A stretch of 64,000 nt of DNA from Lepidodermella squamata. Lineage: Eukaryota > Animalia > Gastrotricha. The notes under the pieces are model-generated. The model was not told where the DNA came from, ran no database searches, and saw only the letters and a program-made list of their open reading frames with translations. Shown here piece by piece: positions 1 to 50,710 of the stretch. Numbering within the stretch: the first letter of the stretch is position 1; each line of letters starts with the position of its first letter. The stretch is taken from assembly GCA_047495785.1 (NCBI GenBank), contig JBLDXI010000066.1, positions 1-64,000 on the forward strand, in the 5' to 3' direction. Position numbers and translations under genes: made by a program.

Positions 1-17
1 ACACATCTCGTGAGAGT
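1..17 (+). other. Untrimmed PacBio barcode adapter (bc1003 + T overhang), technical sequence
   Basis: ACACATCTCGTGAGAGT matches, from memory, bc1003 (ACACATCTCGTGAGAG) plus T. The palindrome arm identity begins exactly at base 18. Confidence 0.85.
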
Positions 18-1913
18 TGACTGAGGAACACCACTTGTCAAAAACCACCTGTATTCGTTTTCGTTTCCGCAGATCGCCGCTCTCCAGAAAAACGGCTAAT
101 TTCAAAGCGCTGCATTTCAAATTTGCCAAGTGGTAAAATCGGAAAACTGAAATCAAACAGTTGCAAAAATCATCAATTTAGTGGGTTAAAATTACGGCAC
201 GAAAGAGAAGCTTAGGTACATTAACTTGCATATGAAAAACGTCTGGAATTATTATTAATTTTTTTCTTGACAGTCTTATCAATGGCGAGAAGGTTTTCGA
301 CCAGCCTTTCGTTCCTTTCCACTGATTTTTAAACAGATTGAATTTTCTTTTATTGAATAACCGTTTTTTCGACGAAAAGCTGTTTTGCCGCCGTAGTCGA
401 GTTTGATAGAGATGTGCAGTTTGCGTTGAAGAAGCGTGTCTCGAAGTTCGAAGAGGTGGCTTCGTAACAGATGATTCGAAAAACTCGCAATCAACGCACC
501 TGTAGTCGGTGTTGGGGTGACCGCAGGCGAAGAGCTTCGTCATAAGCGCGTAGTCACATATTGCGATGAGGCGGAATGAATACATAGCATTTTCAACAAT
601 TATTCCGTTATTAATGGTTGCCGCCATGTATGTTTCCAGATTTTCGCTGGTTTCTTTCCCGCGAAAAGCCGCCATTATATGCTCGCCGCTCAAACCGATA
701 GTTTTTTAGTTGCAACACTACAAAGGTTCGCGATAACGTTGCCAGGTATTTGATTAGTACGGTTGGCAGAGCCATCTATCTGAAGACGAATGTCATTGAC
801 GGAGGAAGATGACATAATCTTGTCTCGAATCCATGCATTAGCTAGATCCGATAGCGACCTCCAGGCGCCGTCATCTAGAATTCAAATATTTCAAATATAT
901 ATAAATAAAATAATAAAATAATAAAATATCATTTAAGTATTTAAATCTAAAATATATTTAAATATTTAAATTTTAAATTAATGAAATTTCAAAAATAATT
1001 AAATATTTTTATAAATACTATTTTAAAATTTCGTTTTTAATATTTTTCAAAATATTATTTTTCTGGCGTTTTTACAAGCGCTAAAAACATCACCTTCAAC
1101 CGAGTGAATTGGTAGAATGTTTCCAATCCTTTTTCGAATTTCGTAAAAAACCTCTCGCTTGACATCAGGTAAACCTAAGTCTACCCGCATGCTATAGGTT
1201 TGCCGAGCACCCAGATTATGCCGCAGGCCTTTTCTGTCAATCTTTGATGATAAAGCACATGCAGTATTTTTTATCGCATTGGAAATTTAAGCTAAATAAT
1301 TTTACTCGAGAGCTTTAGACTCCGGCGAAGGTTCTGCTTTGCGCGGCCAGGAAACTTCAACACTTCCGATCCCTTGATAATCCATTTTCAAAGTAGCCTT
1401 AGTGACAACAGCGCCATTCATCACAGCACCCAGGGTATGACTCTGGCATCTGCTGGAGATGAATGAGTTGCCCTTTTTCGGCTCTCGCTATTACACTTCG
1501 CGGTTTCAGCTCGGCGACCGAATCTGATTTAGGGCGAGATCGACTGATCGTTTTGGCCAACTCTTCTTTGTCTACTGGTTCAGTATAAGTAAATGGCATT
1601 TGTAAAGAGCATAATCTGATTATTGTAAAATGATGAAATATATCATATGCTATTATATGATTATGGAGTAATTTGGTGACTTTTTGCAACCGCAGTGCAT
1701 CGATGGTGTTTCGATGGCTTGATTATTTTATTATTTCTTACTATTTCTGAATGGTATTAAATCCTCTCAGGATAAATATCACGGAACGACGAAATGACGA
1801 AATGACGGAGCGAAGAAATCACGGTCTGGCAAAAAAATCAAAAGCATGGCCGCGTCGCAGCTGCTATTTTTTTCTGAGGCTGACCTTTGATCCTGCAATC
1901 CGGAAGCATAATG
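18..1913 (-). mobile_element. Mirror (probably artefactual) partial copy of the RAG1/Transib-like element left end and transposase
   Basis: Reverse complement of 8490-10389, with 1-bp indels. Confidence 0.85.
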
Positions 1914-4506
1914 CTATCACGGCAATTATCGCAACAGCTGAAGCCAGTTCTGTACTAGCGCTCCCGTCATTTCCGAACAAAGTGCCAATCAACAAGGCGG
2001 CAATGAAAAGTGTAACAGTGAAGTAAATTAAGATGGAATATTTTGTCAGGGCTTTGAGGCGACTCAACTCCCCGCGACTTATCGTAGTGACTGATGCTGC
2101 TTAGCAGTCAACATCTTGTAACGCGTTTGGTTGAGAAAGCAAGCAACAACGCCCGGCCGAGCAAAATTATGAAAGAATTATGGCAGCAATCATTAGGCCC
2201 AATGAAGTCCTTGAAGCGCCTATCGATTGAGCGATTTGGCAATCGAATCGAACCCTCTGATAGGCCAAGCTGATGTCAGTAGTCGACTGTTCGATAGCAT
2301 AGTAGAATGGCGCTGATTTGACGGGACTAGAAGCCAAACTTGCGATAAATAAGGGAATTGAAGTTAGCAGTGCTCCTTCCCAATGTTTGAAAGGTCTGAA
2401 GTGCTCATCATGTCTCAATCTGAGCACAAAACCATAGAAAAGGATGACAGAACCGGACAACATGAAAAATATCGATGTAGTACAGCTGATTATGAGATCG
2501 CTCGAGAGACTAGGGGAAACCGCGAAGACGTAGCACAATATAGAATTATTTCCGAACATGCTAATCAATATCGCTCGGCTTGAGGGGTCTAAGACGGCCA
2601 AACTTGGACGCCAATGCCAATAGCAGCATGTAGATTGTTACGATGCTTGCCAAAGCTGAAAAAAGTGAGATATTGATTGAAATCATTACTGGACATCCCA
2701 AAAAAAACCTTTCATAGCGACATTAGCCCCTTCCGAGATCTGAGGAACGACAACCCTCTCTACAACCAAGGCATCTTTTGGAGGTTGCTTATTGAAAGTC
2801 TTCCACGTGAATCGATCCCTTAAAATAATCATGGGCCCATTTGGTTTTTCGTTGGATTTGTAGTATCCAACAATTTGAGTTCGCGTTTTCGGTGATCCAT
2901 TCACGATATCGACAACGCCTTGCCGGAAAATAATCGGCATACAACCCGAGGACCATTTGGTTGCCACGTCGTAAGAATATTCGCCCTTGAAACCAGTAAA
3001 TGAGAAAGCACCTGCCGCTTTTTCAATTACCTCCGAGATGTCAGAGCTATTTCTCATGCTTAGTTTGGACGTTGTCCAATTTGAAAGGCTCGAATTTCCT
3101 TATCAAATTAAGAACATTGAATTGATTAAGTACTGAGTATTAAGCTTACTGCCTCGCAGAATATGTTCTGTCTCGTTCAATATTAGTCCTATTGCCATGT
3201 GGCGGTCGTAGTATGTCGAACTCCAGTATTCCCAGCCGACAGCTTTCTCCGGGCTATCAATCGTCGAGGTCAAATGGTTGAAAAAGTCTGCTAATGTAAC
3301 CCCGCTTGAATCTGTCTTGTTTTCGCCGTAGATTTCGCTAAGCGGCGCATCGGCAGCAAATATGAAACTGCTGAAGACATCGGCGAACATGCTTTGTTTG
3401 CACCAATGCGAAAGAAAAGCAGGGACTGGGGAATTTTCATCGAATGACAGAAGGAATGATAAGGTGAGAATTACGTAACTCGGACCGTGCAGACCGTAGC
3501 GATGAAGGAAGCAGGGCATTGTCACCTGACTGCCATAAATGTTAAATACAATGATTCTGGGCTGAGATCTAGACAGCTCTTTGAATGTTGTATCCAATTC
3601 TTCTTCATTTTCAGATCCAAGAGGAACTTTGCCGTAGTATACTAGTGACATGTTGCGACGATCTAGCGCATCGAGAAAACTAGCGTCCAACTGCAAAACA
3701 AGATCGAATGAAACAATTGTCTTCGAAATGAAATATATTACCATGTTATCGTACAGGTGAGTATCCGAAATCAAAGCAACACGCTTCCAACCCATTTTAG
3801 CAATGAAATCTGCCATAGCTAAGCAGTAGTAGTCACCCCGCTCTCCCAAAGGAATGTAATTTGAGAATTTTCCTCGCTCGAAAAACAGCTTGGTATCGCT
3901 TGGATAGGCAGATATCTTCCCAATGTTATTAGTCAAATTATATCAAAGAGAAGCTAAGCAACTTACAGCAATCATATTGTTGGGTTTAGCCATCAAAGCG
4001 GATATGGATTGCGGCTGTGCTGAACATTCTGTTATGGCCATAAGGGGTAATCTGTCTTCGACGTCATCATTTTCTCTCAGTTTGTCAGTTATGACTTTGA
4101 CTGTAACATCATCTGTGCACTTCAGCGGGATTTTAATTTGAAATAAAAAAAGAGACCGCTTTACCTGATCATCAATGATTTCGAATACAAGTTCATAGTT
4201 CGGCAACCAATTTCGTAAAGTGCGGAGTCGGTCTAGGGCGAAACTAACTGCCGCTGTAGCTACTGGCCCGATTGCGTAGTCGGGTGAATTGTAAATTAAG
4301 CTTGTCACCACTTTGACAATACGCTTTTGGCCTTCGCCTGGTATTTCGACATATTTCGGCAGTTCGATGTCGAGAGATGAGTTGGAAAAATTCAAATAGT
4401 TTGACAACACGGTTGACATTGCGTAACGTGGCACTGGTGTATTCATCGGTATCAGGCTGAAGGCTGATGGCAAAACGCTAGCAAATGCGATTATGAGTAG
4501 CGCCAT
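1864..4506 (-). pseudogene. Mirror (probably artefactual) copy of the class C GPCR gene, with frameshifting indels
   Basis: Reverse complement of 5895-8539; errors near 2085-2145 and 2570-2580. Confidence 0.8.
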
Positions 4507-4789
4507 AAATTCTTGATATGTATTATCCAAACTCTCAGAAAAATGAGAAATGCATAATTCACGGACTAACCTGTTTGGGACCTAGGCGTAATAAACACGA
4601 GAGCGTTGTTTCAGATTTCAAAGTGATTTCATAGAAATAGGCTACTAATGGGGCATGTGACTGAACGCTCATTCTTGCTCTCATTCGGACATTTCTATTC
4701 TTGCTTCAAGTATAATAGACAGTTGACCTGCACGGCGACATACTCAACCAAGACCTGGTTTTTTTTGTTTTACTTGTCGAGCATTGCTA

Positions 4790-5610
4790 TAGTACAGTGG
4801 TACAGTACGCAGACGACACAACAATATATTTTTCCGCAAAAAATGACTCCGAAGTCCAGGCCACACTGCAGAAGGACATAGACGAAGTTGTAAAATGGTT
4901 GGGCAGCAACTCACTGAAAGTAAACGGGAAAAATCCCAATTGATGATTATCTCTTACAGTTCATCAGAACCAAAAATTGAAATCAAAATCGATGGGAAGA
5001 AAATCGATCAGACAAACTCGATGACATTGCTGGGCGTCATTTTAGATAACAAACTAATTTCAATGACCATGTCGAAAAGGCATGTGCTAAGGCGAGAAAA
5101 GGGCTTTTCGCACTGAAATTAGCAGCGCAAAATGGCTTAAACCGAAATTGTCTCAAAGCCATGGCAAATGGGCTCATCTTTTCGCATCTGCATTACTGCG
5201 ACACAGTTGTCGGTGAGGCATGTGATACATCTTTGCAAAGAATGCAAAGCTTCAAGATAGAGCTGTCCGTATAATCATGAACGCCCCAGATCATGCCGAC
5301 GCTAAGGCCTTACGAAAAGAATTGGGATGGCTAGACCTAAAGGGCAAACGAGGCGTTCATTTAGCCACCTTAATGTATCGCTGTTTGTCTGATCGATTTT
5401 CTTCCCATCGATTTTGATTTCAATTTTTGGTTCTGATGAACTGTAAGAGATAATCATCAATTGGGATTTTTTCCCGTTTACTTTCAGTGAGTTGCTGCCC
5501 AACCATTTTACAACTTCGTCTATGTCCTTCTGCAGTGTGGCCTGGACTTCGGAGTCATTTTTTGCGGAAAAATATATTGTTGTGTCGTCTGCGTACTGTA
5601 CCACTGTACT
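4790..5610. mobile_element. CR1/L2-type LINE reverse-transcriptase 3' fragment at the palindrome centre (+ on 4790-5382, mirrored on - at 5383-5610)
   Basis: QYADDTTIY motif followed by LKVNGKKSQLM, LGVILDNKL, ANGLIFSHLHYCD and LGWLD. Same family as the LINEs at 20372 and 37936. Confidence 0.85.
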
Positions 5611-5894
5611 ATAGCAATGCTCGACAAGTAAAACAAAAAAAACCAGGTCTTGGTTGAGTATGTCGCCGTGCAGGTCAACTGTCTATTATACTTGAAGCAA
5701 GAATAGAAATGTCCGAATGAGAGCAAGAATGAGCGTTCAGTCACATGCCCCATTAGTAGCCTATTTCTATGAAATCACTTTGAAATCTGAAACAACGCTC
5801 TCGTGTTTATTACGCCTAGGTCCCAAACAGGTTAGTCCGTGAATTATGCATTTCTCATTTTTCTGAGAGTTTGGATAATACATATCAAGAATTT

Positions 5895-8539
5895 ATGGCG
5901 CTACTCATAATCGCATTTGCTAGCGTTTTGCCATCAGCCTTCAGCCTGATACCGATGAATACACCAGTGCCACGTTACGCAATGTCAACCGTGTTGTCAA
6001 ACTATTTGAATTTTTCCAACTCATCTCTCGACATCGAACTGCCGAAATATGTCGAAATACCAGGCGAAGGCCAAAAGCGTATTGTCAAAGTGGTGACAAG
6101 CTTAATTTACAATTCACCCGACTACGCAATCGGGCCAGTAGCTACAGCGGCAGTTAGTTTCGCCCTAGACCGACTCCGCACTTTACGAAATTGGTTGCCG
6201 AACTATGAACTTGTATTCGAAATCATTGATGATCAGGTAAAGCGGTCTCTTTTTTTATTTCAAAATTAAAATCCCGCTGAAGTGCACAGATGATGTTACA
6301 GTCAAAGTCATAACTGACAAACTGAGAGAAAATGATGACGTCGAAGACAGATTACCCCTTATGGCCATAACAGAATGTTCAGCACAGCCGCAATCCATAT
6401 CCGCTTTGATGGCTAAACCCAACAATATGATTGCTGTAAGTTGCTTAGCTTCTCTTTGATATAATTTGACTAATAACATTGGGAAGATATCTGCCTATCC
6501 AAGCGATACCAAGCTGTTTTTCGAGCGAGGAAAATTCTCAAATTACATTCCTTTGGGAGAGCGGGGTGACTACTACTGCTTAGCTATGGCAGATTTCATT
6601 GCTAAAATGGGTTGGAAGCGTGTTGCTTTGATTTCGGATACTCACCTGTACGATAACATGGTAATATATTTCATTTCGAAGACAATTGTTTCATTCGATC
6701 TTGTTTTGCAGTTGGACGCTAGTTTTCTCGATGCGCTAGATCGTCGCAACATGTCACTAGTATACTACGGCAAAGTTCCTCTTGGATCTGAAAATGAAGA
6801 AGAATTGGATACAACATTCAAAGAGCTGTCTAGATCTCAGCCCAGAATCATTGTATTTAACATTTATGGCAGTCAGGTGACAATGCCCTGCTTCCTTCAT
6901 CGCTACGGTCTGCACGGTCCGAGTTACGTAATTCTCACCTTATCATTCCTTCTGTCATTCGATGAAAATTCCCCAGTCCCTGCTTTTCTTTCGCATTGGT
7001 GCAAACAAAGCATGTTCGCCGATGTCTTCAGCAGTTTCATATTTGCTGCCGATGCGCCGCTTAGCGAAATCTACGGCGAAAACAAGACAGATTCAAGCGG
7101 GGTTACATTAGCAGACTTTTTCAACCATTTGACCTCGACGATTGATAGCCCGGAGAAAGCTGTCGGCTGGGAATACTGGAGTTCGACATACTACGACCGC
7201 CACATGGCAATAGGACTAATATTGAACGAGACAGAACATATTCTGCGAGGCAGTAAGCTTAATACTCAGTACTTAATCAATTCAATGTTCTTAATTTGAT
7301 AAGGAAATTCGAGCCTTTCAAATTGGACAACGTCCAAACTAAGCATGAGAAATAGCTCTGACATCTCGGAGGTAATTGAAAAAGCGGCAGGTGCTTTCTC
7401 ATTTACTGGTTTCAAGGGCGAATATTCTTACGACGTGGCAACCAAATGGTCCTCGGGTTGTATGCCGATTATTTTCCGGCAAGGCGTTGTCGATATCGTG
7501 AATGGATCACCGAAAACGCGAACTCAAATTGTTGGATACTACAAATCCAACGAAAAACCAAATGGGCCCATGATTATTTTAAGGGATCGATTCACGTGGA
7601 AGACTTTCAATAAGCAACCTCCAAAAGATGCCTTGGTTGTAGAGAGGGTTGTCGTTCCTCAGATCTCGGAAGGGGCTAATGTCGCTATGAAAGGTTTTTT
7701 TGGGATGTCCAGTAATGATTTCAATCAATATCTCACTTTTTTCAGCTTTGGCAAGCATCGTAACAATCTACATGCTGCTATTGGCATTGGCGTCCAAGTT
7801 TGGCCGTCTTAGACCCCTCAAGCCGAGCGATTTGATTAGCATGTTCGGAAATAATTCTATATTGTGCTACGTCTTCGCGGTTTCCCCTAGTCTCTCGAGC
7901 GATCTCATAATCAGCTGTACTACATCGATATTTTTCATGTTGTCCGGTTCTGTCATCCTTTTCTATGGTTTTGTGCTCAGATTGAGACATGATGAGCACT
8001 TCAGACCTTTCAAACATTGGGAAGGAGCACTGCTAACTTCAATTCCCTTATTTATCGCAAGTTTGGCTTCTAGTCCCGTCAAATCAGCGCCATTCTACTA
8101 TGCTATCGAACAGTCGACTACTGACATCAGCTTGGCCTATCAGAGGGTTCGATTCGATTGCCAAATCGCTCAATCGATAGGCGCTTCAAGGACTTCATTG
8201 GGCCTAATGATTGCTGCCATAATTCTTTTCATAATTTTGCTCGGCCGGGCGTTGTTGCTTGCTTTTCTCAACCAAACGCGTTACAAGATGTTGACTGCTA
8301 AGCAGCATCAGTCACTACCGATAAGTCGCGGGGAGTTGAGTCGCCTCAAAGCCCTGACAAAATATTCCATCTTAATTTACTTCACTGTTACACTTTTCAT
8401 TGCCGCCTTGTTGATTGGCACTTTGTTCGGAAATGACGGGAGCGCTAGTACAGAACTGGCTTCAGCTGTTGCGATAATTGCCGTGATAGCATTATGCTTC
8501 CGGATTGCAGGATCAAAGGTCAGCCTCAGAAAAAAATAG
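5895..8539 (+). CDS. GABA-B-receptor-like class C GPCR (signal peptide, Venus flytrap domain, multi-TM region), 6 exons; C-terminus interrupted by a transposon
   Basis: Motifs LPNYELVFEIIDDQCTD, MGWKRVALIS, PRIIVFN, YGLHGPSYV, FTGFKGEYSYD and WKTFNKQPPKD, then hydrophobic helices; no Cys-rich domain. Short GT-AG introns near 6237, 6436, 6661, 7253 and 7694. Confidence 0.8.
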
Positions 8540-8804
8540 CAGCTGCGACGCGGCCATGCTTTTGATTTTTTTGCCAGACCGTGATTTCTTCGCTCCGTCA
8601 TTTCGTCATTTCGTCGTTCCGTGATATTTATCCTGAGAGGATTTAATACCATTCAGAAATAGTAAGAAATAATAAAATAATCAAGCCATCGAAACACCAT
8701 CGATGCACTGCGGTTGCAAAAAGTCACCAAATTACTCCATAATCATATAATAGCATATGATATATTTCATCATTTTACAAATAATCAGATTATGCTCTTT
8801 ACAA

Positions 8805-10940
8805 ATGCCATTTACTTATACTGAACCAGTAGACAAAGAAGAGTTGGCCAAAACGATCAGTCGATCTCGCCCTAAATCAGATTCGGTCGCCGAGCTGAAA
8901 CCGCGAAGTGTAATAGCGAGAGCCGAAAAAGGGCAACTCATTCATCTCCAGCAGATGCCAGAGTCATACCTGGGTGCTGTGATGAATGGCGCTGTTGTCA
9001 CTAAGGCTACTTTGAAAATGGATTATCAAGGGATCGGAAGTGTTGAAGTTTCCTGGCCGCGCAAAGCAGAACCTTCGCCGGAGTCTAAAGCTCTCGAGTA
9101 AAATTATTTAGCTTAAATTTCCAATGCGATAAAAAATACTGCATGTGCTTTATCATCAAAGATTGATCAGAAAAGGCCTGCGGCATAATCTGGGTGCTCG
9201 GCAAACCTATAGCATGCGGGTAGACTTAGGTTTACCTGATGTCAAGCGAGAGGTTTTTTACGAAATTCGAAAAAGGATTGGAAACATTCTACCAATTCAC
9301 TCGGTTGAAGGTGATGTTTTTAGCGCTTGTAAAAACGCCAGAAAAATAATATTTTGAAAAAATATTAAAAACGAAATTTTAAAATAGTATTTATAAAAAT
9401 ATTTAATTATTTTTGAAATTTCATTAATTTAAAATTTAAATATTTAAATATATTTTAGATTTAAATACTTAAATGATATTTTATTATTTTATTATTTTAT
9501 TTATATATATTTGAAATATTTGAATTCTAGATGACGGCGCCTGGAGGTCGCTATCGGATCTAGCTAATGCATGGATTCGAGACAAGATTATGTCATCTTC
9601 CTCCGTCAATGACATTCGTCTTCAGATAGATGGCTCTGCCAACCGTACTAATCAAATACCTGGCAACGTTATCGCGAACCTTTGTAGTGTTGCAACTAAA
9701 AAAACTATCGGTTTGAGCGGCGAGCATATAATGGCGGCTTTTCGCGGGAAAGAAACCAGCGAAAATCTGGAAACATACATGGCGGCAACCATTAATAACG
9801 GAATAATTGTTGAAAATGCTATGTATTCATTCCGCCTCATCGCAATATGTGACTACGCGCTTATGACGAAGCTCTTCGCCTGCGGTCACCCCAACACCGA
9901 CTACAGGTGCGTTGATTGCGAGTTTTTCGAATCATCTGTTACGAAGCCACCTCTTCGAACTTCGAGACACGCTTCTTCAACGCAAACTGCACATCTCTAT
10001 CAAACTCGACTACGGCGGCAAAACAGCTTTTCGTCGAAAAAACGGTTATTCAATAAAAGAAAATTCAATCTGTTTAAAAATCAGTGGAAAGGAACGAAAG
10101 GCTGGTCGAAAACCTTCTCGCCATTGATAAGACTGTCAAGAAAAAAATTAATAATAATTCCAGACGTTTTTCATATGCAAGTTAATGTACCTAAGCTTCT
10201 CTTTCGTGCCGTAATTTTAACCCACTAAATTGATGATTTTTGCAACTGTTTGATTTCAGGTTTTCCGATTTTACCACTTGGCAAATTTGAAATGCAGCGC
10301 TTTGAAATTAGCCGTTTTTCTGGAGAGCGGCGATCTGCGGAAACGAAAACGAATACAGGTGGTTTTTGACAAGTGGTGTTCCTCAGTCACTCCTGCCATA
10401 AAAAATTCGAATCACTACGGCTTGGCTAAGGCAATTTATTGAAAAATTTACTTCTCGGCAATAGTTACCACATTGCTTTAGGTCTTCAAACAGTTTGCTG
10501 GGAATCTCGCGAAAACATCTTTGAAAACTGGCTTTTTCATTCCGGAAGAAATAGCTTTAACCCCTGCTTCCGAGCACCGCCTCACCTTGCTGAAAAAACT
10601 GATCCTAATGTCGCAGGTCGTATTCGATGACGTCAGAGCACGGTCAAAGGATAAAACAGTCAAAATCGAAACCAACGCCCGGAAAATAATGATCAACAAA
10701 TACCCTGAGATGTGGAAAGAAGCTGTAGGAAAGGTGACTTCATACGCACATATGCTCAGCGATCATGTTTACGAGCACCTGGACGAATTCGACCTACATG
10801 CTTTATCTGCTGAGAACGCTGAGCTGGAATTGAAGAAAGTATTGAAATTCGCTTTGAAATCGTCAACGAATGCAAGACCTTTCGCCCCGCAAGTTTTGGA
10901 GAATGAAAACCGCCTTTTTTATGCGAAAATGGCTGATTAA
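8805..10940 (+). CDS. RAG1-core/Transib-like (CMC-group) DDE transposase, ~583 aa; exons 8805-9097, 9162-9310, 9531-10210, 10260-10430, 10482-10940
   Basis: Spliced CDS is 1752 nt with no stops. Motifs RLQIDGS (D), ICDYALMTKLF..YRCVDC (D + CxxC), PDVFH and SYAHMLSDHVYE..LSAENAE (Hx4H + ExxE). An upstream exon is possible. Confidence 0.8.
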
Positions 10941-11062
10941 TTTGATTATACGGTTGAATGTTTTACAAAATTTGAGCAAGACATTACACCTTTATTTGGC
11001 TTCGACATCGGAGTGCTTCAATTACTTCTATTTGATCACAAATTTGAAAATAAAAATTGAGT

Positions 11063-11626
11063 TCAAGCATCTTTCTCGATCACTCGCCATTTGCTCGGAT
11101 TAAGGCTGGTGTCCCAGACCATTTCGTAGTCATCCTTAGAAAAGTCGAATTTGAAGAAGCCTTTCTTTATGTCAGCGTCCAGCTCAGCTATCTTTCGCAA
11201 AATCGGGGTTTGTTTTTTGCCCACCATTCGCTCGAACGCCCCGTTTGCGTCTTCGGGGTTTTCCACCATCCACGCGTCCCACGCAGACTTGGGAGCGGTG
11301 GATGATTTGCCGATTAGTGCGAACGCTGCATGCATATGTCGCAATCGATTTTCCATTTCAAAGGACCATTTCGAGTAACCCCCTGAATAAAAAAATCATT
11401 ATCGTTGACTGCTTTAAAAATTAAAAAAATGAGTACCTCGATAGCTATTGACTGCGAGTAAAACGTTTCGCAGTTTCACTCGGCGTTCGGCTGGGAGTTG
11501 CGGAGAAATGACCGTTTGCGACAACTCAGTCATGAGTTGCTCGTCGGTCATCGCGGCAGCCGCCCCGGCATCAACTTTACGCTTCTTACCGGGGTGACTG
11601 GGACCGGGTGCGCTATTCGAAGCCAT
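11063..11626 (-). CDS. Transposon-borne orphan protein, ~170 aa; exons 11626-11437 and 11382-11063
   Basis: A GT-AG phase-1 intron joins MASNSAPG..KKRK..VNSYR in frame to GGYSKWSFEMENRLRH..IEKDA*. Lies inside the TIRs, convergent with the transposase. Confidence 0.7.
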
Positions 11627-11795
11627 GGATAGGAACAGAAAAATCGGAAAAATCAAAATAATATTTTTGCCGGAAACGAAGAAACCACGAAGTGACGAAG
11701 CGACGAAAAATATGCACGCAGAGATATACAAAAAACGCAATAACAATTTTTTTCGGGAGTTGACCTTTGATCCTGCAATACGGAAGCATAATGAG

Positions 11796-11974
11796 CGCAC
11801 CTGGCTGTCGTGTCTTTGGATCGCGTTTCGAAAAGTGCTGTTCCGGCTGTACGTCGGACGGATACATCTGCAGCGAATATCCGAGTTGACAGTGGCGGTT
11901 TGCGGCTACATGGCTTCGACGTCTCTAATAATGCTAAATTGTCGTCTTCTCGGAGTCGCTCACGTCTACACTGA
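11796..11974 (+). pseudogene. Displaced native 3' end of the GPCR CDS (end of last TM helix plus cytoplasmic tail)
   Basis: Joining 8489 to 11796 gives VAIIAVIAHLAVVSLDRVSKS...RSRSRLH* in frame. Confidence 0.75.
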
Positions 11975-12317
11975 ACGCCACTGCATCTGAGGCGACGTAA
12001 TGGGTTCTAATCATCAAAATGCCAATTCAACAAATCTCTAGAAGTTGATTCATTGTCTAAAAGATTGATGCATAAATGACGCACCTGTGAAACCCAGACC
12101 GGCGTTTGCACTCTGCAGAACAACGCTGAGCACAGGGGTTGAAAATTGTGATATTTTGCCAATTTGTTTGTCCTTTTTCGGAAATCATAAATTCAAGGAA
12201 AATAATTTCAGCCAGAAAATGAAAACTTTTGATGGCTGTGGGAGTTGAACCATCGTTCTCACACTCCTTACCCATGCTCTCCCACCACTGAGCCATCTAC
12301 TCGCGAAAAAAACTCGA

Positions 12318-17721: not shown

Positions 17722-18840
17722 CGTCAAGGTTCAACTTACCAGTGGTTCCACAATGTAATAACAATTCTGAAACAATATAACAATCCTATAGCAATTTAAG
17801 GAAATCTAGAATCCAGGTGGAGAAAGAAACCGAGTTACCTGATGGAACCGATAAACCGGTAAACCTGCGAACCGGTAAAGCGGACGGGAACGGACGGTAA
17901 CCGGAAAAATCTGTGGGTTTTATGTTTTCACCGTTAAAATAAAAATAAATGATAACTTGAAATATTTCATTGTTAAAAGCCATTGACAACAATTAATAAT
18001 TTTAAAATTTCAAATCTTCCCTCGTTTTTTTGGGGGACGTTCGGGGCAGCGTCCTAAAAAATGAGTTTTTTGCCCTCAAGTCATCGTTAGCTGTCGCGGT
18101 CTTTGGGGCTGTTATTTTTCTGATATCTTCAATTTCAATACCTATCTGATGGTGTTTTTATTTTTATTTTATACCTCAGCGTTTTCAAGAAAATCCGTAC
18201 AAACCTACTTTTGAGAAAACCTTCTCTCTTTAGTGTTTTAGATAAAAAATCATCGTGCCGGAATTTATATATGTGGAATTTATATATAGAACACATTGCT
18301 TTGTCCGGACTTCGTAATTCGGATGTTTACATAAGTCGGACCCTTTTTGACCGGTTTCAAGTTTTGAAAGTCCGAATTAAAGAGAAAATTAAGGCTAGAG
18401 CGCGGCGCAAACTTGAAGCGATCATCATTTTTAATAAATACTATGCAATACATATATGGGAGCTCCGTAACCGATAGCAGATAGGTCGTAATAGAGGCCT
18501 GAATGTTTGTAATTAATTTGTATTAAGTCATGTATATTATTTGTATCTTCCGGCTCGTTCCAGCGGCGGTTTTTTGCATCAGCCAACGTCGCAATTTGAG
18601 CAAAGCCTCTTGTCACTATAAACTTGAAAACCATTGCATTGCTTCGAAATTGTATTGCTTCTCTTTCGCAGGGTCTCACTTTTTTCAATGTTGTTTTCGA
18701 AATGTATTTTTCTCGCTTCTGTGTCTTTGGACACGGAATAAAAGTGCGCCAAAAAATCACGCATCTACTCAAACCTCCACTAAAATCAGTTAAATTTTTA
18801 TTTCATTCATTTATTTTCTATTCTCAAATTTAATAAAATA

Positions 18841-21800
18841 ATGAGTGTAGTTATCTGCATCTTTCTCATCTTGAGCCTAGCAGCATCAGCCAATACACAA
18901 GAGTTCAAGCGATGTTTCTCGCGTTTGAATGACTCTTTCACAGGATGTAAAGAGAACTGCTCATTCTCCGACGATGTTCAGGCAAGCCATGTTTTTTAAC
19001 GTCAGGCTTTTTAAGTTGTAATTTTCGCTGAATTCCATGAAGCTCGGGCTCAAGCTGAATTCGCTGGCGAGTTGCAAATCCGGCGTGAGTTGGTCAATTT
19101 TCAGCTTATTTTTTTACCTTAAATTTTATTTCAGGACGCTCGAAGCTGCTTCAATTATAAAACGATCAACATGCGATGTATCCCCCGCAATCTTGGCTGC
19201 AATAAGGACGATGAAGTTTTGGTACCTATGTGCCTTTTTGAAATGAAATTCCTACGCTTCATTACTCCTATTCATCTCAACAGACGGCTGAATTTCCCGG
19301 AGGCGTCGGCGACTTCGAAAAGCAGTACGATCTGTGCCGATGGACGATTAAAAAATTCTTGGTTTGATTTATATTTTTTTTCGCAGCCGATTAAATTATA
19401 TTGTCTTGTTTTTTATTTATCAGAATAATCCGGCGACAGTCTGTAACCAAAATGGCCAACGAACGTGTATTCCGGTCAACGGCCCGTGCCCAAATAACGG
19501 AGTGAGCTTCGATAAAAAGAAATAATGGAATCATTCACTTTGTTGGTTTTTCTTTTCAATGCAGGCGAAGATCGGCAGTCATACAACAATGCAACTGTGC
19601 ATGGCGCAGGAGAACAGTTGGTTTCATTTTATCAATATTAACAATTTGCAAATCAAATGGAGAATCGTGCCTCAATTTTTTGAATTTATGTGGTTTTGCC
19701 TTAATATCAAGAGCCAGATTTATTCTTTAAAATCAACTATAATTCTTACAGTTGTCCGGAATAATTCCGATTTCTTGGCCTTCAATCGATGCTTTCTGCA
19801 AAGCGACCGGTCGTTCGTCGGCTGCCAATCGACGGCTTGTGATGCAGCCTCAATGACTAAGGTAAGTCTCTTGCAAAGATTGGAATCATTTTATTCATTC
19901 CTGATTTTCATTTTCAGTCTTACAGTGACGGAACTTACATCGACAGATTCCACTGCGTCGCAGGCGTTCGTTTTTCCAAGGACTTTCTTTGCTAGAAAAA
20001 TAATTTTGAATTTTACGCAGCCTGCGGCCCTATGCTCAACATCTGGTTCAACGGTTTGCCGAAATACGTGCCCGTCTCCTATGACAGTGGTAGGCTAAGC
20101 TTTTAACAAAATTAATCAAAGCTAATATTGGATGGTCAGCTTTGGTAGATTAATTTTTAGGCCACCAAATTTCACTTGTTTATTGAGGTTCAAGAGCTAG
20201 TGATTTGTTTTATTTATTTATTTATTTAAAAGCTATTACACCCAAGAGAGGGAAGCTTGACAAAGTGTAAGGAAAACAACATATAATTGCAGGACAGGAT
20301 CACATTTAGGACAGGAAAAGTGTTGTAGAAGAAGCACAACAAACAGTGAAAATACAAAATATTATTTTTAACTATGCGTTTACGACATTGCCGATGTTGA
20401 AATGTGCGTAGGCAGCTTCGCGACACGCCTTTGCAGACTGCGCGTCGTGAACGATCGAAGGCATTTCATTCCATAGATGCGGGCCCCTGTACGACAGGCT
20501 CAGCTGGCCACGCTCGGTCGTGAAGGTCGGCTTGAACATCGGCTCGAAATTGCGACAGTTATAGCCGTGGCTGCGGTCGTTTAGCTTGAACATCGACATG
20601 AAGTCGTCCGGCGCCATCTCGTGCAGGCTTTTCCAGATGAATGTGCATAGGTGTACCGCATGTTTCGGGTGGACAGTAAGCCATCCAAGTCGATGCCGAA
20701 GCGGGGCCGGATCCGCCAAAGGATGAGCGCCGTAGATGATTTTGATGGCTCGATCTTGTGACGATTGCAGCTTGTCGCGAGTCGATTTTGAGGCTTGCCC
20801 AAGGGTAATGTCGCCATAATTCAGATGACTGACAACGAGACCGTTGGTCATCATGACAGCAGTTTTGCTATCAATTCCAGCATCGACAGCTTGTTTGAGA
20901 GCGAACAAGCCCTTTCGAGCCTTGCCCTTCGCCATCTCGATGTGTTCGTCGAATAAGAGCTTATTGTCAATATGGAAGCCGAGTGTGTTCATGGATTCAG
21001 ACGGCTTAATCGCAACGCCACCAATGGTGACCGTGAAGTCAGGCGCTGTCGAAAGGTGCGGCTTGAGCAGCATAAACTGCGATTTTTTGCCATTTACCGC
21101 CAGGCTGTTCTGCTTCAGCCATGCGCACAACCTGTTGAGTTCTAGTTGTAGAACAGCCTGTAGTTCGTTGATGTTTTTCGAACCAAAGAAAATGGCAACG
21201 TCGTCAGCGTATTGAGCAATGCCGCATCGGTTCAAAATCAAAGACGGGTCGTTTACATAAATTGTGAACAGGAGCGGGCCAAGGACCGATCATTGTGGCA
21301 CACCGCAATCAATCGACTCGAACGGGGATGTTTCGCCGTTGATTTTCGTGGTTTGGCGGCGATTGCTCAAGTAGTTTATCAAAAGGTGAACTGACCTTTC
21401 CGTTACCCCAGCGGATCGGAGCGACTCGATGATCCCATCGTGGTGAAGCGTGTCGAATGCTTTTGACAAGTCGATCGACACGGCTCCAACCACGTTTCCT
21501 GTGTCAAGTAGACGTCGCCAGCGTTCGGTAAACGATGCCACGCATGTGTCTGTCGAATGGTATTGGCGAAATCCGTGTTGCGCCGGTGTTAAGAACTTGA
21601 TCGCTCGCAAGTGATCTTTCAGCTGTGTTGCCAGGCAACGCTCGAACGTACGAGCTAGCGGTGAAGTGATCGAAATCGGCCTGAAATTTCCGACCTCAGC
21701 CTTTGATCCGGATTTATGCAGCGGTGTAACAATAGCTGTTTTCCAATCGTTGATGAAGACGCCATCTCGAATGGCCAAGTTGAAGAGCGTTGTGAGATGT

Positions 21801-24218
21801 CGAGCAATTGATGGCTTTGCCATTTTGACGAGGCACTCGGGAATGCCGTCGAACCCGGTCGTAGCCTTGTAACTCAGTTTGTCGATCGCCTTTTCGACAT
21901 CGGCGACCGAGACAGCTCGAAACGTAAACGGTGTTGAGCTTCGTTTACGCCTTGCGAAGTTCAGACAGCCTCCGAGACTTTCGGCCACGATTTTCCCTGC
22001 TTTCGCGAAAAAAACATTAAAATTTGTGGCCTTCTGCAATGACTCATCTTTCGAAAGCTACGCCCAGACGTTGCGGTTCTTTGGCTTTGGACGGAAATCT
22101 TTGACGATTCGCCACAATTTTCGCGTGTCGTTGCCAGCCTTCTTAACAGGACGACGATATCGAGCACGGCGCGCCTTGCGTCGTTGTCGTTGACGTTGTC
22201 GCCGAGTGAGCGTTGGATCAAAATGATTCTTGGCTTGGCGATTTCGCTTTTTAGCTTGTTCTTTGTCGATCAACGGGGCAACTTCGTCCATCACAGCTAG
22301 AAGTCGAAATTTGATTTGAGACCAGAAAGCTTCGCAATCGTCCGTTTTGTCGACCGTTGCAAGTTTCTCCTGTAGTAGTTGATTGAGTCGTTCAGTATCA
22401 ATACTGTTGTAGTCACGAAATTTTGTGTTTGTCGAGGGTTTTGCTATTTTCTCGCCGTCGTTATCAAGAACCAACGATGTCGCGTAGTGGTCGCTGAGAC
22501 CTACGATTGTGCAAGTTTGCGCTATTTCGGCCTGAGGAATGTTGGTCCAGAAGTGATCTAGGCATTTCTCAGACGCTGGTCGGGTTACTAGTTGAGTGTA
22601 GGCTGGTCGTAAATCGAAGTCACCAAACACTTTAGTCATCGCGTTAGCAACATTTACGTCACGCAGGTTCCAGTTGAAGTCTCCGCCGATGATGTGGTAG
22701 TCAGCCGTGATGTCTTTGCAGAGGAGAAGAAATTCCTCTAAATCGTCGGCGTCGTTGTTATTGAACTCGTCGCTAGAACCCTTGGGTCGCCTGTAGATCG
22801 TGGTCATAGCAATACTTTTCCCGGACGGTAGTGTTATAACGCATTGATAATTTTCAAAGACTTCCGATGTCAGCGATCGTTCGACAACCACAGCGTGTGT
22901 TTTGTAGACCAGTAAGCCGACGCCTCCACCTCCCGATTGCGCTCGACCTTTCCAATAGCAATCGTAGCCGAAATAGGGGTCCTCAGGAACGCTGAAGTTC
23001 TCTGCAAATGCGTCGTCAACATATTTTGGCATGCAGCCATCCAGCACTTTGACCTCGCCAAGAAAGATTGCTGTTGGACGGACTACTTCTGCAAACTCGG
23101 CTAGGTTCGGAAGCTTGTCTTTTGTTAATAAGCCATTGAGATTTGCTTGCACGAAGCAGTGCAGGTTCGGAGCAAAGCGCGATCCAACTAGTTCCTGGTG
23201 ATCCATTGTTGGCGGTACCGATTGCGCTGGTTCAGCCGGTCCCGGGTTCGGTGATAGTCCCGAGATTAGCAGCATCAACAAAATGAAACCTCGCTGGCGA
23301 GTAATTTGGCGGAAGGGGTCACGCGCAGCGAAGCAGAAGAATATTGAGAGCCATTCTTGAGTTAGCGTTTCAGTTGTTCTACCGTCATGGATAGATTCTT
23401 GTTATTTTCTTAAGGCTTGTGATATGATAATTAATCAGTAGGTCATATTTTCAGTTCACAATTTTCCGGGCGAAATCAGACTTCGCTGGCAACTATGCTG
23501 ACTGCTTGCAATCTCAGGTCCCTCAGGTAAGAATTTTTTCTTGTTATTTTCGCATCGCCCCAAATTCTGACCCGGACTTGTAGATCGCGACTTACGCGCC
23601 ACAACAATAAAAAAGTAGGATCATCGAACTAGGAAGTATTATCGGGCCCAAATTTTATGACCAAAGGCCCCCGTCCCCCATCTGTGGTTGCTTTGGGATT
23701 TTTCCACTTTCCACTTTGGCCTCGTGAACCGGGCGGTACGACACACTTCCCGTAATTTGTGCTCTTTGTGCTAGGAAACGGGTTATTTGGCATTAAACAG
23801 GCGAGTCGGCTGTGGGTGGAGACGGGATTGGTTAAGCGGGACCCACCGCGGGCCATGATGAACCCGCGGATCCGTCTGTGATCCTCCAAGACGGGTCGAC
23901 CCTTACCCCACAAAAATAAAGCCGTGCCCCGGATTTGTGGATGCCCCTGAATTCAAACTGAAAATATGCTGTCTAGCACATCATCGGCTAAATGAAAAGA
24001 CCTATCGATAGACTGGTGGGAACCTCGACTTTCATCAAAGTCTCATTAAAATTATTCATATTCTTAATGAGTTAACTTACAAGTTTAAACCCAGTTTTAT
24101 ATTTCCCAATTATTTTCCGATTATAGTGCGAAAACTGCACAGGCATCCATCAACAATGCCTGACTCCCAATTCGTGTACCTGCAAGACGGGATGGACTGG
24201 CAAAGACTGCAATACATC
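18841..24218 (+). CDS. Secreted Cys-rich multi-exon protein, copy 1 (five 4-Cys modules + one EGF-like exon); LINE in an intron; last exon uncertain
   Basis: Signal peptide MSVVICIFLILSLAASA. About 11 small exons conserved with the copy at 43078. EGF exon CENCTGIHQQCLTPNSCTCKTGWTGKDC near 24127-24218. Confidence 0.75.
20207..23400 (-). mobile_element. CR1/L2-clade LINE (APE endonuclease + RT) with in-frame stops and (AATA)n tail
   Basis: NLNGL, GGGVGL, IYRRP, GDFN, LSDH; NFRPIS, QHGFR, DLSKAFD, GVPQ*SVLGP, YADD. Confidence 0.93.
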
Positions 24219-24974
24219 TGTAAGATTAAATGTTTAGAATGACCATTTTATCATTACCGTTACAACCTGTTTCGACCTCTTTTTAAGAATTACTTCGGTT
24301 GTGTCGTAGGTCGTAGGGGAGCTTCATACTTTGATTTGTTCATACCTAACAACATGGCCTGAGTATTGACTCAATATTGCAGTCAATATTTGACCAGGGA
24401 TTCAACTTTCATTTAAAAATTAGTGACGCTTATTTCATTATTGCGCTAATTTTATGAATCGAATAGGAGTAGCATAGGAGATAAGTATGTAGCATCTACG
24501 ATCTACGAGGAGTAGTAAAAATAAAGGTTAGCGGCGATCTAGCGACCGAAGCGAGCAAATTCTAGCAGAGTTAAAAACAAATTGCTTGAAAGTGAGCTAA
24601 TCTGACTCATTGGAAATGTTGACGCGTTCAATGCTGAATGATCGATGAAGGCCCAACAATAATGTCAGAATAATGTAGTAAAAGCGAACTTTTTGACATT
24701 TTCTGGCGGCCCTTTGGCATGTGCCCGCAGTGCCCGAGCGTTAATCTGCCACTCAATGGCTCGCGTCGCGGAGTCATTTTTCAAACGGTAAACGTCATAA
24801 AATTCAACGTTTCGATTTAGTAATTTTGTATCAAACAAAAAAATGTATTGGCCCGCTAATATTTCGAAAGTTATACAACTGAATTTGATCATTGATTTAT
24901 GGTGGCAATAGAACCACCAGGGTAGCAGCCATGGCGCCGCATCACTGTCGTTTTCAGTCGCATGGTAGTAATAC

Positions 24975-25200
24975 ACAGGTTTCCTAAGGGGGTTTGCAAA
25001 GACAAATGAAGCGGTTTTGCCGATTTTTTTGAACATTTTAACTTTACCGGAAGCATAAACTGATTTTGCAATATCTTCGTTAATATGATAGATAGAGGCT
25101 TGAAACTTTGTTTGCTAGGGTAACTTTTGCCGCTGAACAAGCTAGTGACATCAGCTTTACAGCATTCAACGCGGCTTATCGATTATCGATTATCGGTTAT
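24975..25200. repeat. Interspersed non-coding repeat, also present inverted at ~39950-40200
   Basis: Shared gaagcggttttgccg, ccggaag, gctgaacaagct and (cgattat)n blocks. Confidence 0.55.
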
Positions 25201-25714
25201 TGTAGATCGATCAACTGACTGATCGACATTAACTCAGCCATTTTCGATTGTTTCTTCAGAGCTCAGAGCTTATGTCTACTATCGGCTACATCATAAGCAA
25301 ATTTTAGTGAACCATGATCTTCATTGTTTATACTCCGGTACGCCATTTATGTTAGAGCGTAGTAAAAACACTGTTCAACCTGTATAAACCCTGTTTTTCA
25401 AATTTTTCGGACCTGTGTAAACATTAAACTGTGTAAACCTGTGTAAACTGTTTAAACAGCCCCATCCCTGGTTCTTTCAACGTGAGTGTACTTTCAACGT
25501 AACGCTCATGTTTAAAGTGTACTCTAAACGGCGGGCAACTTTCAATGCAACATATGCACTTTACTCAGCTCATCCCAAGTTGCCCACCTATGAAATCAGA
25601 CAGGAACAGCGGGGCTTCAAAATTGTTATGATAAATCATTTTTTATTTTAAATGTTGATGAAGTTGAATCGCGTAAAATTAACTTGAATGATATTATTTT
25701 ATTTTTTACTACAG

Positions 25715-26848
25715 GCAGTAAAATCCTATTTTCTATCTTCGCTACAAAGTGGTTACTTTCATCAACAAGTGAAGGCGTGTGAGACGGACGGCGGTCGTCT
25801 GGCGACGATTTTCACAGCAGCAGACTTGGCTGCGGCGGCGCAGTCTATAATGGCAGCAACGTTCGTCGGGTTAATGGCTGACTTCAGGTGGGACGACGAT
25901 AACAGCCTCATCCCAATCGTCTCCCCATTTTGGGAAATCAATAGCCTAGCCGGCCGCGGCAATTGTGAGTTTGATGGGCTGCTATATTTCGAGCTAGCTT
26001 TGTAACGAAATTCCACTTTTCCTGTACTATCTATAAAAACTAGGATCTGGAACTAGAAACTAGAACCTGAATCGAGGATTTTAGAGCGTTGCCTAAATAA
26101 TTGAGCCTTTGAGAGAAATAATTGAGAGATTAATACAAATCAATTCCCAATATGCATTTCAAACATTCTGGTATTTTCGACTCTTCAAAGAGATTTCGTA
26201 GTAGATCTGTTTGAAACAAAGCAGACATGTTCATCCGTATGCCTATTTGCCTGATAACTCATCTTTTTTCGCTTTTTTTAGTTTACAGAAGCTTTGATTT
26301 AATGGTATCTTTTTTAATTCCAGGTATTGTTATCGATATGCAAGGCTTCCATGATAGGGATTGCGATTATCAGAGTTATGGACTTTGCGCTGGCACCGTG
26401 AGTTTTAGCTTTCGACTCATCTTATTGAATAATTTCATGAACCAATATTTACCTTTCAGGTATTAGCTGAGATGGAAATTTCGGGTTCAAAAGGCACTAG
26501 GGATCAAATGGCCCAATATTGCCAAAATCGTAGCAAATCGCTTGTTGTAATCAAGGATCAAGCAACTTACGACGCCGCTAAAGCCAAAGTGAATTCAGTC
26601 GGCCTTGAAGCGTTCATCGGGGCTAAAAGACCCAATTTGGCTGATTATTCTTGGATAACCGGCCAGCCATTCGACAATTCGATCTTCGATTTCTCGGGAC
26701 AGCAAGACTTCAGCAGGCAATGTGAGGCGATCGATTTGTTAGTTGATGTAATTGTTTAATTTATTATCTAGGCGCGGCGATCTCCGCTGGTTCACTCATA
26801 CCATATTTTTGCTCTGCCGCCTTGCGTGGCTTATGCGAGAGAATTTGA
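25715..26848 (+). CDS. Double C-type-lectin-like domain gene, copy 1 (5' exon not resolved)
   Basis: ACETDGGRLATIF..FVGL..FRWDD..C..HDRDC..GLC and YCQNRSKSLVVIKD..AFIGA..YSWITG..C..C..GLCE; canonical introns. Confidence 0.75.
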
Positions 26849-27587
26849 GTTCTCTCGCATAAGCCATATGGTTGATGGTTGAAAATACCCCCAACTCGAG
26901 CATCCTACTTCGCACACTGCACGATTCTATAAACAATGAATGAAACCTGATCAACTATTACCTTATTACCTTATGAATGAACCTGGTTAACTTATCTATT
27001 TATCTGATTTCCTGAAGCAAAAACACAATTTCGATGTCATTTTTTTCTGAGAACCACATCTTGCTGAATTCAGTAATAAATCATTATTTGCCTTACTTAT
27101 TTACGCGTACCGATCTCCACCGATCTGTGGGAGAGAACGTGAGAGAACAAATCACAACTTTTGCAATGAGACAGTGTGAACTATAAACCCGATGCTCGCC
27201 AATCAGTAGCCATCAGTATCAATCAGTCAACAAAAAATCAGTAGAAAAAGCACGAAATAGATTGTTAGATTGTTGTTCCTTGTTAGATTCTCCGTGAAAG
27301 ATTCAGATTCTTTAGCATTTTAGTGAAATCTAAGGTCACCTTAGGGTCAAACTCCCTTTTTTGAGGTTTCAGCGATGTGAACCATACAGTGAAAACGTTG
27401 TTTTAATTGAGATCCTGAGACTGGCTATTCGAGATCCTCATAGAGATCCTCATAGAATCGCAGTTAGCTAGCGGCCCTGTCACAGCACCAAATGCAAGAG
27501 ATCAAAAGCGCAGCAAATGTCACCGAGTTTCTCTGGGCGACAACTCCACTGTCAACTCGAATGTCAATAAAATCGACACCAAAGTGT

Positions 27588-29231: not shown

Positions 29232-29710
29232 GTTTTCAAGTACACCGCGCGATTCTATGAACAATTCATGAAACTTGAGTTGACTATCATCTGATTTCCC
29301 GAAATAGCAGAGACATTGTGATGTCAATTTATGCTGAGAACCTCATCTTGTATGGCAGTCTTTAATAAATCATTATTTGGCATATCGTTCAGGCGTATGT
29401 TAGTTACGTTATTGGGCTGTATCTGACAGTTAACAAGTGAAAAGTGAGGTTAGGCGAAATTTGTGAAATCGTGTTATTTATGATGCCACTTTTAAGTTGG
29501 GCGAAGCAGGAGCCGAACGATATCAAAAAAAGGTTAATAGTCATCACGGTTGTTAAGAAAATTCAAGAATCGCCCCTCTTCAAGTCAACGCACCTTTTAC
29601 TATTTGCTGGAAAATACGCCAAACCCCACTTTTCACATGTCAATGGTCATCTTTTATTGTCAGCAAGAAAAGTATGTAACAAAAGGCCATCCGGCAGTTT
29701 TTCAGCGGTC

Positions 29711-42891: not shown

Positions 42892-43077
42892 CTTTCGAAG
42901 GGTCCCATTTTTGCAATGTTGTTTTCGATGTATTTTTCTCGTTTGTGTCCTTGGACACGAAATATAAGTGTGCCAGCTGATTATCACTGAAAAAAAATCA
43001 CGCACTCACATCTCCAACAAAATCCGTGTCATTTTTGTTTCATTCACTTATTTCCTATTCTAAAATTATTTGTAATA

Positions 43078-50121: not shown

Positions 50122-50145
50122 GTAAGAGTAAATATTTAGAATGAC

Positions 50146-50593
50146 CCAGACCGGCATCAACAAATCCAAACAAAGGGGTGAAATCGATTTGTACGGAGTT
50201 CTTCAGCTTTCACGTTTTTAAAAGCCGAACAACACCGAAAACTGCGGTTGGAATTTGTGTTCGGTGTTGCTCGGGTATGCTTGCGGTTTGCAATGTAAAA
50301 TCCAGCATATAAATTAAATAAACCTGGCAGGCTGTAGGATTTGAACCATCTATCCCGCAATCCACACGCAGCCTCTGTCAACATTCAACATTGTGCAACC
50401 TTCTTTCTTGGAATGAGTTTCCGATTTCCTTTTAGGGATTTTACATTGCAAACCGCAAGCATACCCGAGCAACACCGAACACAAATTCAAACCGAAGTTT
50501 TCGGTGTTGTTCGGCTTTTAAAAACGTGAAAGCTGAAGAACTCCGTACAAATCGATTTCACCCCTTTGTTTGGATTTGAAGATGCCGGTCTGG
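50146..50593. mobile_element. MITE with ~155-bp near-perfect TIRs
   Basis: ccagaccggcatc..gcaatgtaaaatcc vs ggattttacattgc..gatgccggtctgg; absent at the paralogous site ~24243. TSD unclear. Confidence 0.85.
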
Positions 50594-50710
50594 AGACCTA
50601 TTTTAAAAGAACCTTTTGAGTCTTTATGAACCCCTTCTTGAAGACTTACATCGGCTTGTGTCATAGCGGTGATGGATTTTTTCCATTCCCAACAAAATGG
50701 CCTCAGTGTG

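Follow-up and report, generated by a model that had tools for sequence, protein, structure and literature searches.

The stretch of DNA considered here, hereafter the window, comprises 64,000 nucleotides (nt) of the gastrotrich Lepidodermella squamata (contig JBLDXI010000066.1, positions 1 to 64,000). Positions 8490-11793 are occupied by an element of 3,304 bp, bounded by terminal inverted repeats (TIRs) and containing two predicted genes that converge tail-to-tail: a transposase gene on the plus strand and, on the minus strand, a smaller partner gene, termed here ORF2 (ORF, open reading frame). We consider it probable that this is an autonomous-type cut-and-paste DNA transposon, representing a rare lineage, so far not catalogued, within the CMC-Transib (RAG1-fold) supergroup of DDE transposases (CMC: CACTA, Mirage, Chapaev), and, jointly with this, that it lies within a coding exon of a gene for a membrane protein.

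The TIRs (8490-8537 on the plus strand, pairing with 11746-11793 on the minus strand) are 48 nt long and 90% complementary, with differences at 5 of the 48 positions, so upholding the TIR-bounded 3.3-kb element of an earlier reading of this DNA (the original prediction). Each end has a bipartite design in which a terminal CATTAT(G), found at 8490-8496 in the left TIR, is followed by a 17-18-nt spacer and then by a conserved CAAAGGTCA box (8514-8522). Three matches to the 33-nt terminal pattern lie in the window, where zero are expected. The same terminus, CATTAT plus about 18 nt plus CAAAG(G)TC, is common to the window and to two related elements on metagenome contigs, L004 (264-297) and L001 (206-239), and CAT...ATG termini are seen in these three and also in a variant copy in reads of the species. 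Further inside, the left end bears an array of TTCGTCAT-type units with an 8-bp period (8596-8625, plus strand), mirrored at the right end by an array of TTCGTCGC-type units of the same period (11676-11710, minus strand). Subterminal 8-bp arrays of this kind lie about 70-130 bp inside the end in the window, L001 and L004, the unit sequence being specific to each lineage.

The boundary of the element is well placed, because the contig of a further relative, L006, starts exactly at the C of CATTAT and a variant contig from the species' reads (loose end at 8505) likewise starts at CATTAT; assembly graphs break in this way at the edge of a repeated unit. A PIF/Harbinger identity, with two genes and a TWA duplication, was entertained and dropped, since these contig starts assign CATTAT to the element itself and since the transposase motifs are not Harbinger-like. 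The candidate target-site duplication (TSD) is AG, present at 8488-8489 and identically at 11794-11795. Thus the flanking duplication originally claimed is there on both sides, but it is of only 2 bp, for which an accidental match has a chance of 1/16, and the one complete relative available, L004, whose ends lie at 264 and 3511, is flanked by ATG on either side, i.e. by 3 bp. From the AG flanks in the window and the ATG flanks in L004 the TSD is short, 2 or 3 bp. No empty site was seen in contigs of the species' run mapped onto the region, and no paralogous empty site was found within the window.

The transposase gene is predicted to consist of five plus-strand exons separated by introns of 64, 220, 49 and 51 nt and to encode 583 amino acids (aa) without a stop. 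Exon 1 (8805-9097; residues 1-98) covers the N-terminal part, in which there are a basic helix and a beta-rich block that is conserved; the exon is 34% identical to relative L007, and 12 of its columns are invariant across three lineages. Exon 2 (9162-9310) encodes a helical region preceding the RNase H fold, and exon 3 (9531-10210) the RNase H-like core, with D181 (QIDG), D255 (CDY), CGH..RC274xxC277 and PDVFH362; it has a 25-aa insertion and lacks 7 aa of helix alpha1. Exon 4 (10260-10430) ends ..NSNHYGLAK and is followed by a GC-AG intron (10431-10481). Exon 5 (10482-10940), the helical C-terminal part, contains H521-x4-H526 and S-A-E542-N-A-E545, the candidate third catalytic residue, in a motif kept in L004 and L008.

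As a stop-free model this gene, which is that of the original prediction, holds: homologous coding sequence for all five exons is found on unrelated contigs of relatives, L007 being aligned as three blocks across residues 9-550, with the order unchanged in L004 and L002. The junction of exons 2 and 3 (9310/9531) is fixed by P0001, P0004 and P0006, relatives in which the equivalents of the two exons form one continuous ORF. Three of the four intron positions, at residues of about 98, 375 and 432, recur in relatives (L002, L004, L007). Intron 2, the AT-rich one of 220 nt, is seen in no relative. The predicted donor of intron 4 is a non-canonical GC (AAG/GCAATT). L002 uses GT at the matching codon, and L004 and L008 have no intron at this position; GC-AG introns are a recognised minor class.

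ORF2 is predicted to have two exons and to encode 169 aa. Its first exon (11626-11437, minus strand) includes a nuclear-localisation-like motif, PGKKRKVD; a GT..AG intron (11383-11436) separates it from the second (11382-11063, minus strand), which holds a conserved C-terminal domain and the stop codon. ORF2, through this second exon, is 34% identical (E 4e-10) to the convergent ORF of L007/L008, and it aligns with L004:2663-2950(-) with 12 invariant columns. In three lineages of about 30% identity (window, L004, L007/L008) a convergent partner ORF is thus found at this place and in this orientation, so the tail-to-tail, ProtoRAG-like layout that had been proposed for the window alone recurs in its relatives. 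The stop codons of the two genes are separated by 122 bp (10941-11062). This spacer has an AATAAA on each strand, at 11049-11054 (plus) and 10996-10991 (minus), so that the two transcripts would overlap at their 3' ends and might pair into double-stranded RNA.

Comparison of ORF2 with Protein Data Bank (PDB) chains gave only chance haemagglutinin matches, and a profile search of 5.8 billion protein clusters gave a single match, L004's own ORF2. Judged by its sequence, ORF2 is a partner specific to this family and not a kelch protein, and therefore not RAG2-like. It evolves fast, as do the lineage-specific subterminal 8-bp repeats. The most parsimonious hypothesis would make it an element-specific accessory factor for DNA binding or end pairing, by analogy with En/Spm TnpA or Harbinger's Myb-like protein.

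The nature of the transposase was assessed mainly through an AlphaFold2 model of relative P0006, which covers the equivalent of exons 2-3 and was built from a 9-row alignment. The core of the model has predicted local distance difference test (pLDDT) values of 70-92 and an RNase H topology in which the first Asp (QIDG) lies at the end of beta1 and the second (DY) just after beta4, the canonical positions in RNase H folds. Among the first 43 Foldseek matches in the PDB, 42-43 were to RAG1, BbRAGL or HzTransib (best E 7e-5); with Foldseek and VIA-align together, these three were the only solved structures matched. The top eight structural matches in Swiss-Prot were all RAG1. The alignment extends over RAG1 468-820 and follows the order DDBD end, pre-RNase H, RNase H, ZnC2. 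HzTransib scores below RAG1, over 130-187 residues only. On this model the catalytic core is of RAG1/Transib-type fold (pre-RNase H, RNase H, ZnC2-like), and the RAG1-core-like transposase of the original prediction is to that extent borne out.

The sequence motifs agree with the model in their arrangement. D, D, CxxC, [F/L]H, Hx4H and ExxE are present and follow the RAG1 order, as had been claimed; CxxC, PDVFH and Hx4H are conserved in relatives. The CxxC lies 19 residues past the second Asp (D-x18-C-x2-C), the spacing found in RAG1 between D708 and C727, C730, and S-A-E-x-x-E follows 16 residues after H-x4-H. Two of the correspondences read by eye did not survive. The SRPKS that had been matched to GRPR of RAG1 is not conserved in relatives, where only the basic helix downstream of it is, and the pairing of HNLGARQTYSMR with TFLSCSQYHKMYR falls just beyond the region covered by the structural alignment, in which it is the next helix that is matched. 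The basic helix of L004 (..LSRRAKKHR..) presumably resembles the nonamer-binding helix of RAG1, a likeness that we take as a lead only and not as a test.

Nor do these motifs single out RAG1 or Transib in the way that the original prediction had supposed, since C(2)C, LH and H(4)H are published hallmarks of Chapaev transposases (PMC4079192). Moreover, a survey of RNase H-like proteins placed Pfam DUF1280, which corresponds to Chapaev, together with RAG1 (PMC3985635), and DUF1280-bearing clusters match the transposase as well as RAG1 does: in the ESM Atlas they are the top named neighbour by features (0.97, 206/256) and by shape they tie with RAG1, with TM scores of 0.58 and 0.57, respectively. 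In addition, the best matches among AlphaFold DB clusters are uncharacterised invertebrate, nematode and fungal proteins at E 4e-9, better than the 7e-5 of RAG1 in the PDB, and the C-terminal exon resembles DUF4218- and Plavaka-type clusters, which belong to CMC. To our knowledge no CMC transposase, whether CACTA, Mirage or Chapaev, has a solved structure, and the PDB ranking consequently cannot separate Transib from CMC.

It has accordingly to be asked whether the element is simply a divergent CMC member of the Chapaev branch, perhaps already present in Repbase or Dfam, whose likeness to RAG1 is the general likeness of the CMC-Transib supergroup. The DUF1280 clusters, the AlphaFold DB matches to invertebrate and fungal proteins and the shared motif set all speak for this, as do the TSD of 2-3 bp, within the CMC range of 2-4 bp, and the fact that the only Pfam signals, weak ones found in a single relative, are to DUF1280 (E 0.037; 14 bits, with the cut-off at 25) and Transposase_21 (E 0.17). 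Set against it are the termini, CAT...ATG and not CAC...GTG (PMC4079192), a DUF1280 hidden Markov model (HMM) that is significant for no family member, and the mere handful of relatives among 5.8 billion protein clusters. A conserved second gene, moreover, is not a described feature of Chapaev as far as we know. On balance we regard membership of the Chapaev branch as unlikely.

Alternatively, the element could be a member or sister of the Transib/RAG-like lineage, with modified ends, a shortened TSD and a partner recruited independently of RAG2, which is how the original prediction read it. Here the top matches among solved structures and in Swiss-Prot, all RAG1, RAGL or Transib, are in favour, together with the module order aligned to RAG1 468-820 from DDBD end to ZnC2, the D-x18-C-x2-C spacing, the resemblance of S-A-E-x-x-E to A-S-E962-G-N-E of RAG1 and the bipartite ends; reported Transib TSDs of 3 and 2 bp (bioRxiv 10.64898/2026.08.26.747230) can be accommodated too. 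Against these stand the inability of a PDB devoid of CMC structures to tell Transib from CMC, the absence of any match at HMMER level to chains of RAG1 or Transib or to the RAG1 Pfam models, and the low, short matches to HzTransib (130-187 residues). The ends also disagree, with CAT where all 21 Transib families examined have CAC (PMC1131882), a spacer of about 18 nt and an inner box that is not A-rich. We rate this affiliation as quite improbable.

The preferred reading is therefore of a CMC-Transib element whose model and motifs would place it as a separate-looking, rare family near the junction of Chapaev and RAG1, its branch being left unplaced; that it forms a separate lineage, as the original prediction had suggested, is plausible. 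Several results weigh against this reading. Pfam scans of all exon pieces and of the relatives returned nothing significant and no match to the RAG1 models (nor any to DUF1258), and searches of PDB chains, RAG1, BbRAGL and HzTransib included, by phmmer and by profile gave no matches at E<=10. As these searches provide no link to RAG1, Transib or Chapaev at the level of sequence, the placement derives from a fold model of moderate confidence and from language-model features. The model, further, is of relative P0006 and not of the window protein, and its mean pLDDT is 61.7; that of the C-terminal half, which carries Hx4H and the Glu, is poor (pLDDT 46.5), and the meeting of the D/D/E and zinc-ligand residues is not visible in it. 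ORF2 has no detectable domain, with 0 matches in the Pfam scans, and its role is one that we purely infer. The TSD lengths, 2 bp in the window and 3 bp in L004, are inconsistent, in a sample of two complete insertions. Finally, the window copy is short of 7 aa in helix alpha1 and has a GC splice donor, and the element is found in no RNA run, the only public run that contains it being a DNA run (as contigs).

These last points bear on the claim that the element is intact and still active. Contigs of that one public run, which is from the species itself, differ from the window copy by an additional 21 nt after 9783 and by the absence of 21 nt at 10662, both in frame, and otherwise by a single substitution in 1.27 kb. 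Those additional 21 nt restore a segment of RNase H helix alpha1 (residues 152-172 of P0006 in the model) that is present in all relatives, and it is exactly here that the window row of alignment A2 shows a 7-residue gap. Since this segment is kept in the copy from the reads and in all relatives, the window copy reads as a variant, with an in-frame deletion, of a different and more canonical copy, and is probably a slightly damaged derivative. Diverged variants of the element are also present in the run, and read depth suggests only a few copies per genome. Of the predicted intactness, then, the freedom from stops remains, qualified by the helix alpha1 deletion and by the GC donor of intron 4; with these two defects, and with the element in no RNA run, the claim of continuing activity is not sustained.

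A more radical view would hold that the window copy is a dead relic, made to look intact by an optimistic splice model, and that ORF2 has no functional tie to transposition. Consistent with such a relic are the GC donor of intron 4, the 220-nt AT-rich intron 2 that no relative shares, the loss of 7 aa of a conserved helix that the reads' version and all relatives retain, the five differences between the 48-nt TIRs, the element's presence in no RNA run, and the noise of 1-bp indels in the assembly. On the other side, 583 stop-free codons spread over five exons with conserved motifs are unexpected in an old relic, both of the 21-nt differences from the other copy are in frame, and GC-AG introns do form a recognised minor class. 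In addition, three lineages retain ORF2, alike in position, direction and sequence, which speaks for its having a role tied to the element. The relic is possible but, in our view, doubtful.

If the preferred reading of a CMC-Transib transposon is adopted, the following mechanism may be envisaged. D181, D255 and E542 would form the active site, and C274, C277, H521 and H526 a zinc site of RAG1 type. The transposase would bind the bipartite ends and cut there, cleavage probably generating a hairpin on the flanking DNA, by the route that RAG and Transib take, and integration would take place with a stagger of 2 bp, perhaps 2-3 bp. The small, presumably nuclear partner protein would most likely bind the fast-evolving subterminal 8-bp repeats and help to pair the ends, as TnpA does in En/Spm.

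The family to which the element belongs is very rare in public data. A phmmer search with exon 3 against 1.8 billion representative proteins gave five matches, all of them family members, and profile searches of the 5.8 billion clusters with the transposase, run twice, again recovered family members only and added one more, for a total of six relatives. All are on short ENA metagenome contigs; the JGI metagenome contigs and IMG/VR viral contigs scanned contained none. The relatives fall into at least three lineages, about 30% identical to the window protein and sharing its architecture. Adjoining one of them is an intronless ORF of 644 aa (L007:1233-3167, minus strand) with classical CMC-type motifs (DG, D-LPA...C-x2-C, LH and H-x3-H...E); it has no Pfam match, and hhalign found no match between it and the family profile.

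The insertion site is a long ORF encoding a protein of multi-pass membrane type (7700-8539). This host gene (window 7700-8489 and 11794-11990) has no Pfam match. When the element and one AG are taken out, the host ORF joins a hydrophilic, S/R-rich tail; when the element alone is taken out, it joins a hydrophobic frame.

The surroundings are themselves duplicated. A 10.4-kb inverted duplication, or foldback, has arms at 14-5028 and 5372-10392 about a centre of 343 bp, and one of its breakpoints lies inside the transposon at about 10392. The third occurrence of the TIR pattern, at 1881-1913, was considered as an independent insertion and ruled out, as it is the mirror arm of this duplication. 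The arms are 99.66% identical, with one mismatch and 16 one-base indels, differences that resemble long-read consensus noise, and read depth is 54-58 within the foldback against 45 outside it, i.e. without doubling; the duplication may for these reasons be an artefact of assembly or of foldback reads. Elsewhere in the window a higher-order tandem repeat (48116-50139) has a period of about 631 bp with sub-units of 130-160 nt at 96-100% identity, and a related copy at 24108. Many colinear direct repeats of 78-92% identity, about 24-27 kb apart (18767-29346 and 43004-54141), suggest, from their sequence, an older segmental duplication of a gene cluster.

The recombination system of RAG1 and RAG2 derives from a two-gene transposon, and we know of few natural relatives of it that carry a partner gene. 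A compact element of 3.3 kb combining a RAG1-type core, distinct bipartite ends and an unrelated partner gene kept across deep divergence would thus offer a tractable comparison, through which to ask how partners are acquired and depended upon, how end recognition and TSD length evolve, and at what point Chapaev, Transib and RAG1 come together. More speculatively, the family could represent a third deep division of the RAG1-fold transposons, distinct from both classical Transib/RAGL and classical Chapaev, whose transposase works only with its own small, fast-evolving partner reading the subterminal repeats. This bolder reading is tentative and we think it unlikely; if true, it would represent an independent 'RAG1 plus partner' solution and would suggest the repeated origin of two-component architecture in this enzyme class. 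Should the element prove to be an ordinary divergent Chapaev, its value would be smaller, lying in a new family and in a conserved accessory gene for Chapaev.

It remains to set the element beside the systems already described. With Transib, the RAG1 core and ProtoRAG it shares the predicted order of modules and their fold, pre-RNase H, RNase H and ZnC2, together with a CxxC after the second Asp, [L/F]H, Hx4H and ExxE near the C-terminus, a protein length of about 600 aa and bipartite terminal repeats; no sequence similarity to their transposases is detectable. The details of the ends differ. Transib TIRs have a CACAATG-like heptamer and an A-rich nonamer separated by about 23 (or 12) bp, with CAC at positions 1-3 in 21 of 21 families examined and a TSD of 5 bp (PMC1131882). 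The element has T and not C at position 3 (CAT), a spacer of 17-18 nt, an inner CAAAGGTCA box in place of an A-rich nonamer, and a TSD of 2 (or 3) bp. However, since some Transib elements have TSDs of 3 or 2 bp besides 5 (bioRxiv 10.64898/2026.08.26.747230), TSD length alone is weak evidence against Transib; the RepeatMasker class for Transib, it may be added, is CMC-Transib (same source). The resemblance to ProtoRAG lies in a convergent partner gene inside the TIRs, seen in the window, L004 and L007/L008, but the partner here is a 169-aa orphan whereas that of ProtoRAG is the kelch-type RAG2L.

Chapaev TSDs are of 3-4 bp; in the two complete insertions available the duplication, likewise short, is 2 bp (the element) and 3 bp (L004). 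Chapaev is approached also in the motifs RC274-x2-C277, PDVF-H362 (with F for L) and H521-x4-H526, in an intron-containing transposase of about 550-600 aa, and in the DUF1280 clusters that are the nearest named neighbours of the transposase by features and tie with RAG1 by shape. The element departs from Chapaev in its termini, CAT...ATG against the 'invariable' CAC...GTG (PMC4079192), in a DUF1280 HMM score below significance (best E 0.037), and in the possession of a conserved second gene and of subterminal 8-bp arrays.

Within the remaining CMC groups, the Mirage TSD is 2 bp in the Repbase classification, close to the 2-3 bp of the element, and the C-terminal exon has its DUF4218-/Plavaka-type resemblance; matches to Transposase_21 and DUF1258, which would point to CACTA or Mirage, are not significant. 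The element ends in CATTAT and not CACTA, and where the plant CACTA motif is H-x3-H it has H-x4-H. CACTA/En-Spm is like it in employing two proteins, TnpD and TnpA, and in having short repeats inside both ends that are candidate sites for the accessory protein. The gene structure differs: the two products of En/Spm are alternative splice forms, whereas those of the element are predicted from separate, convergent units.

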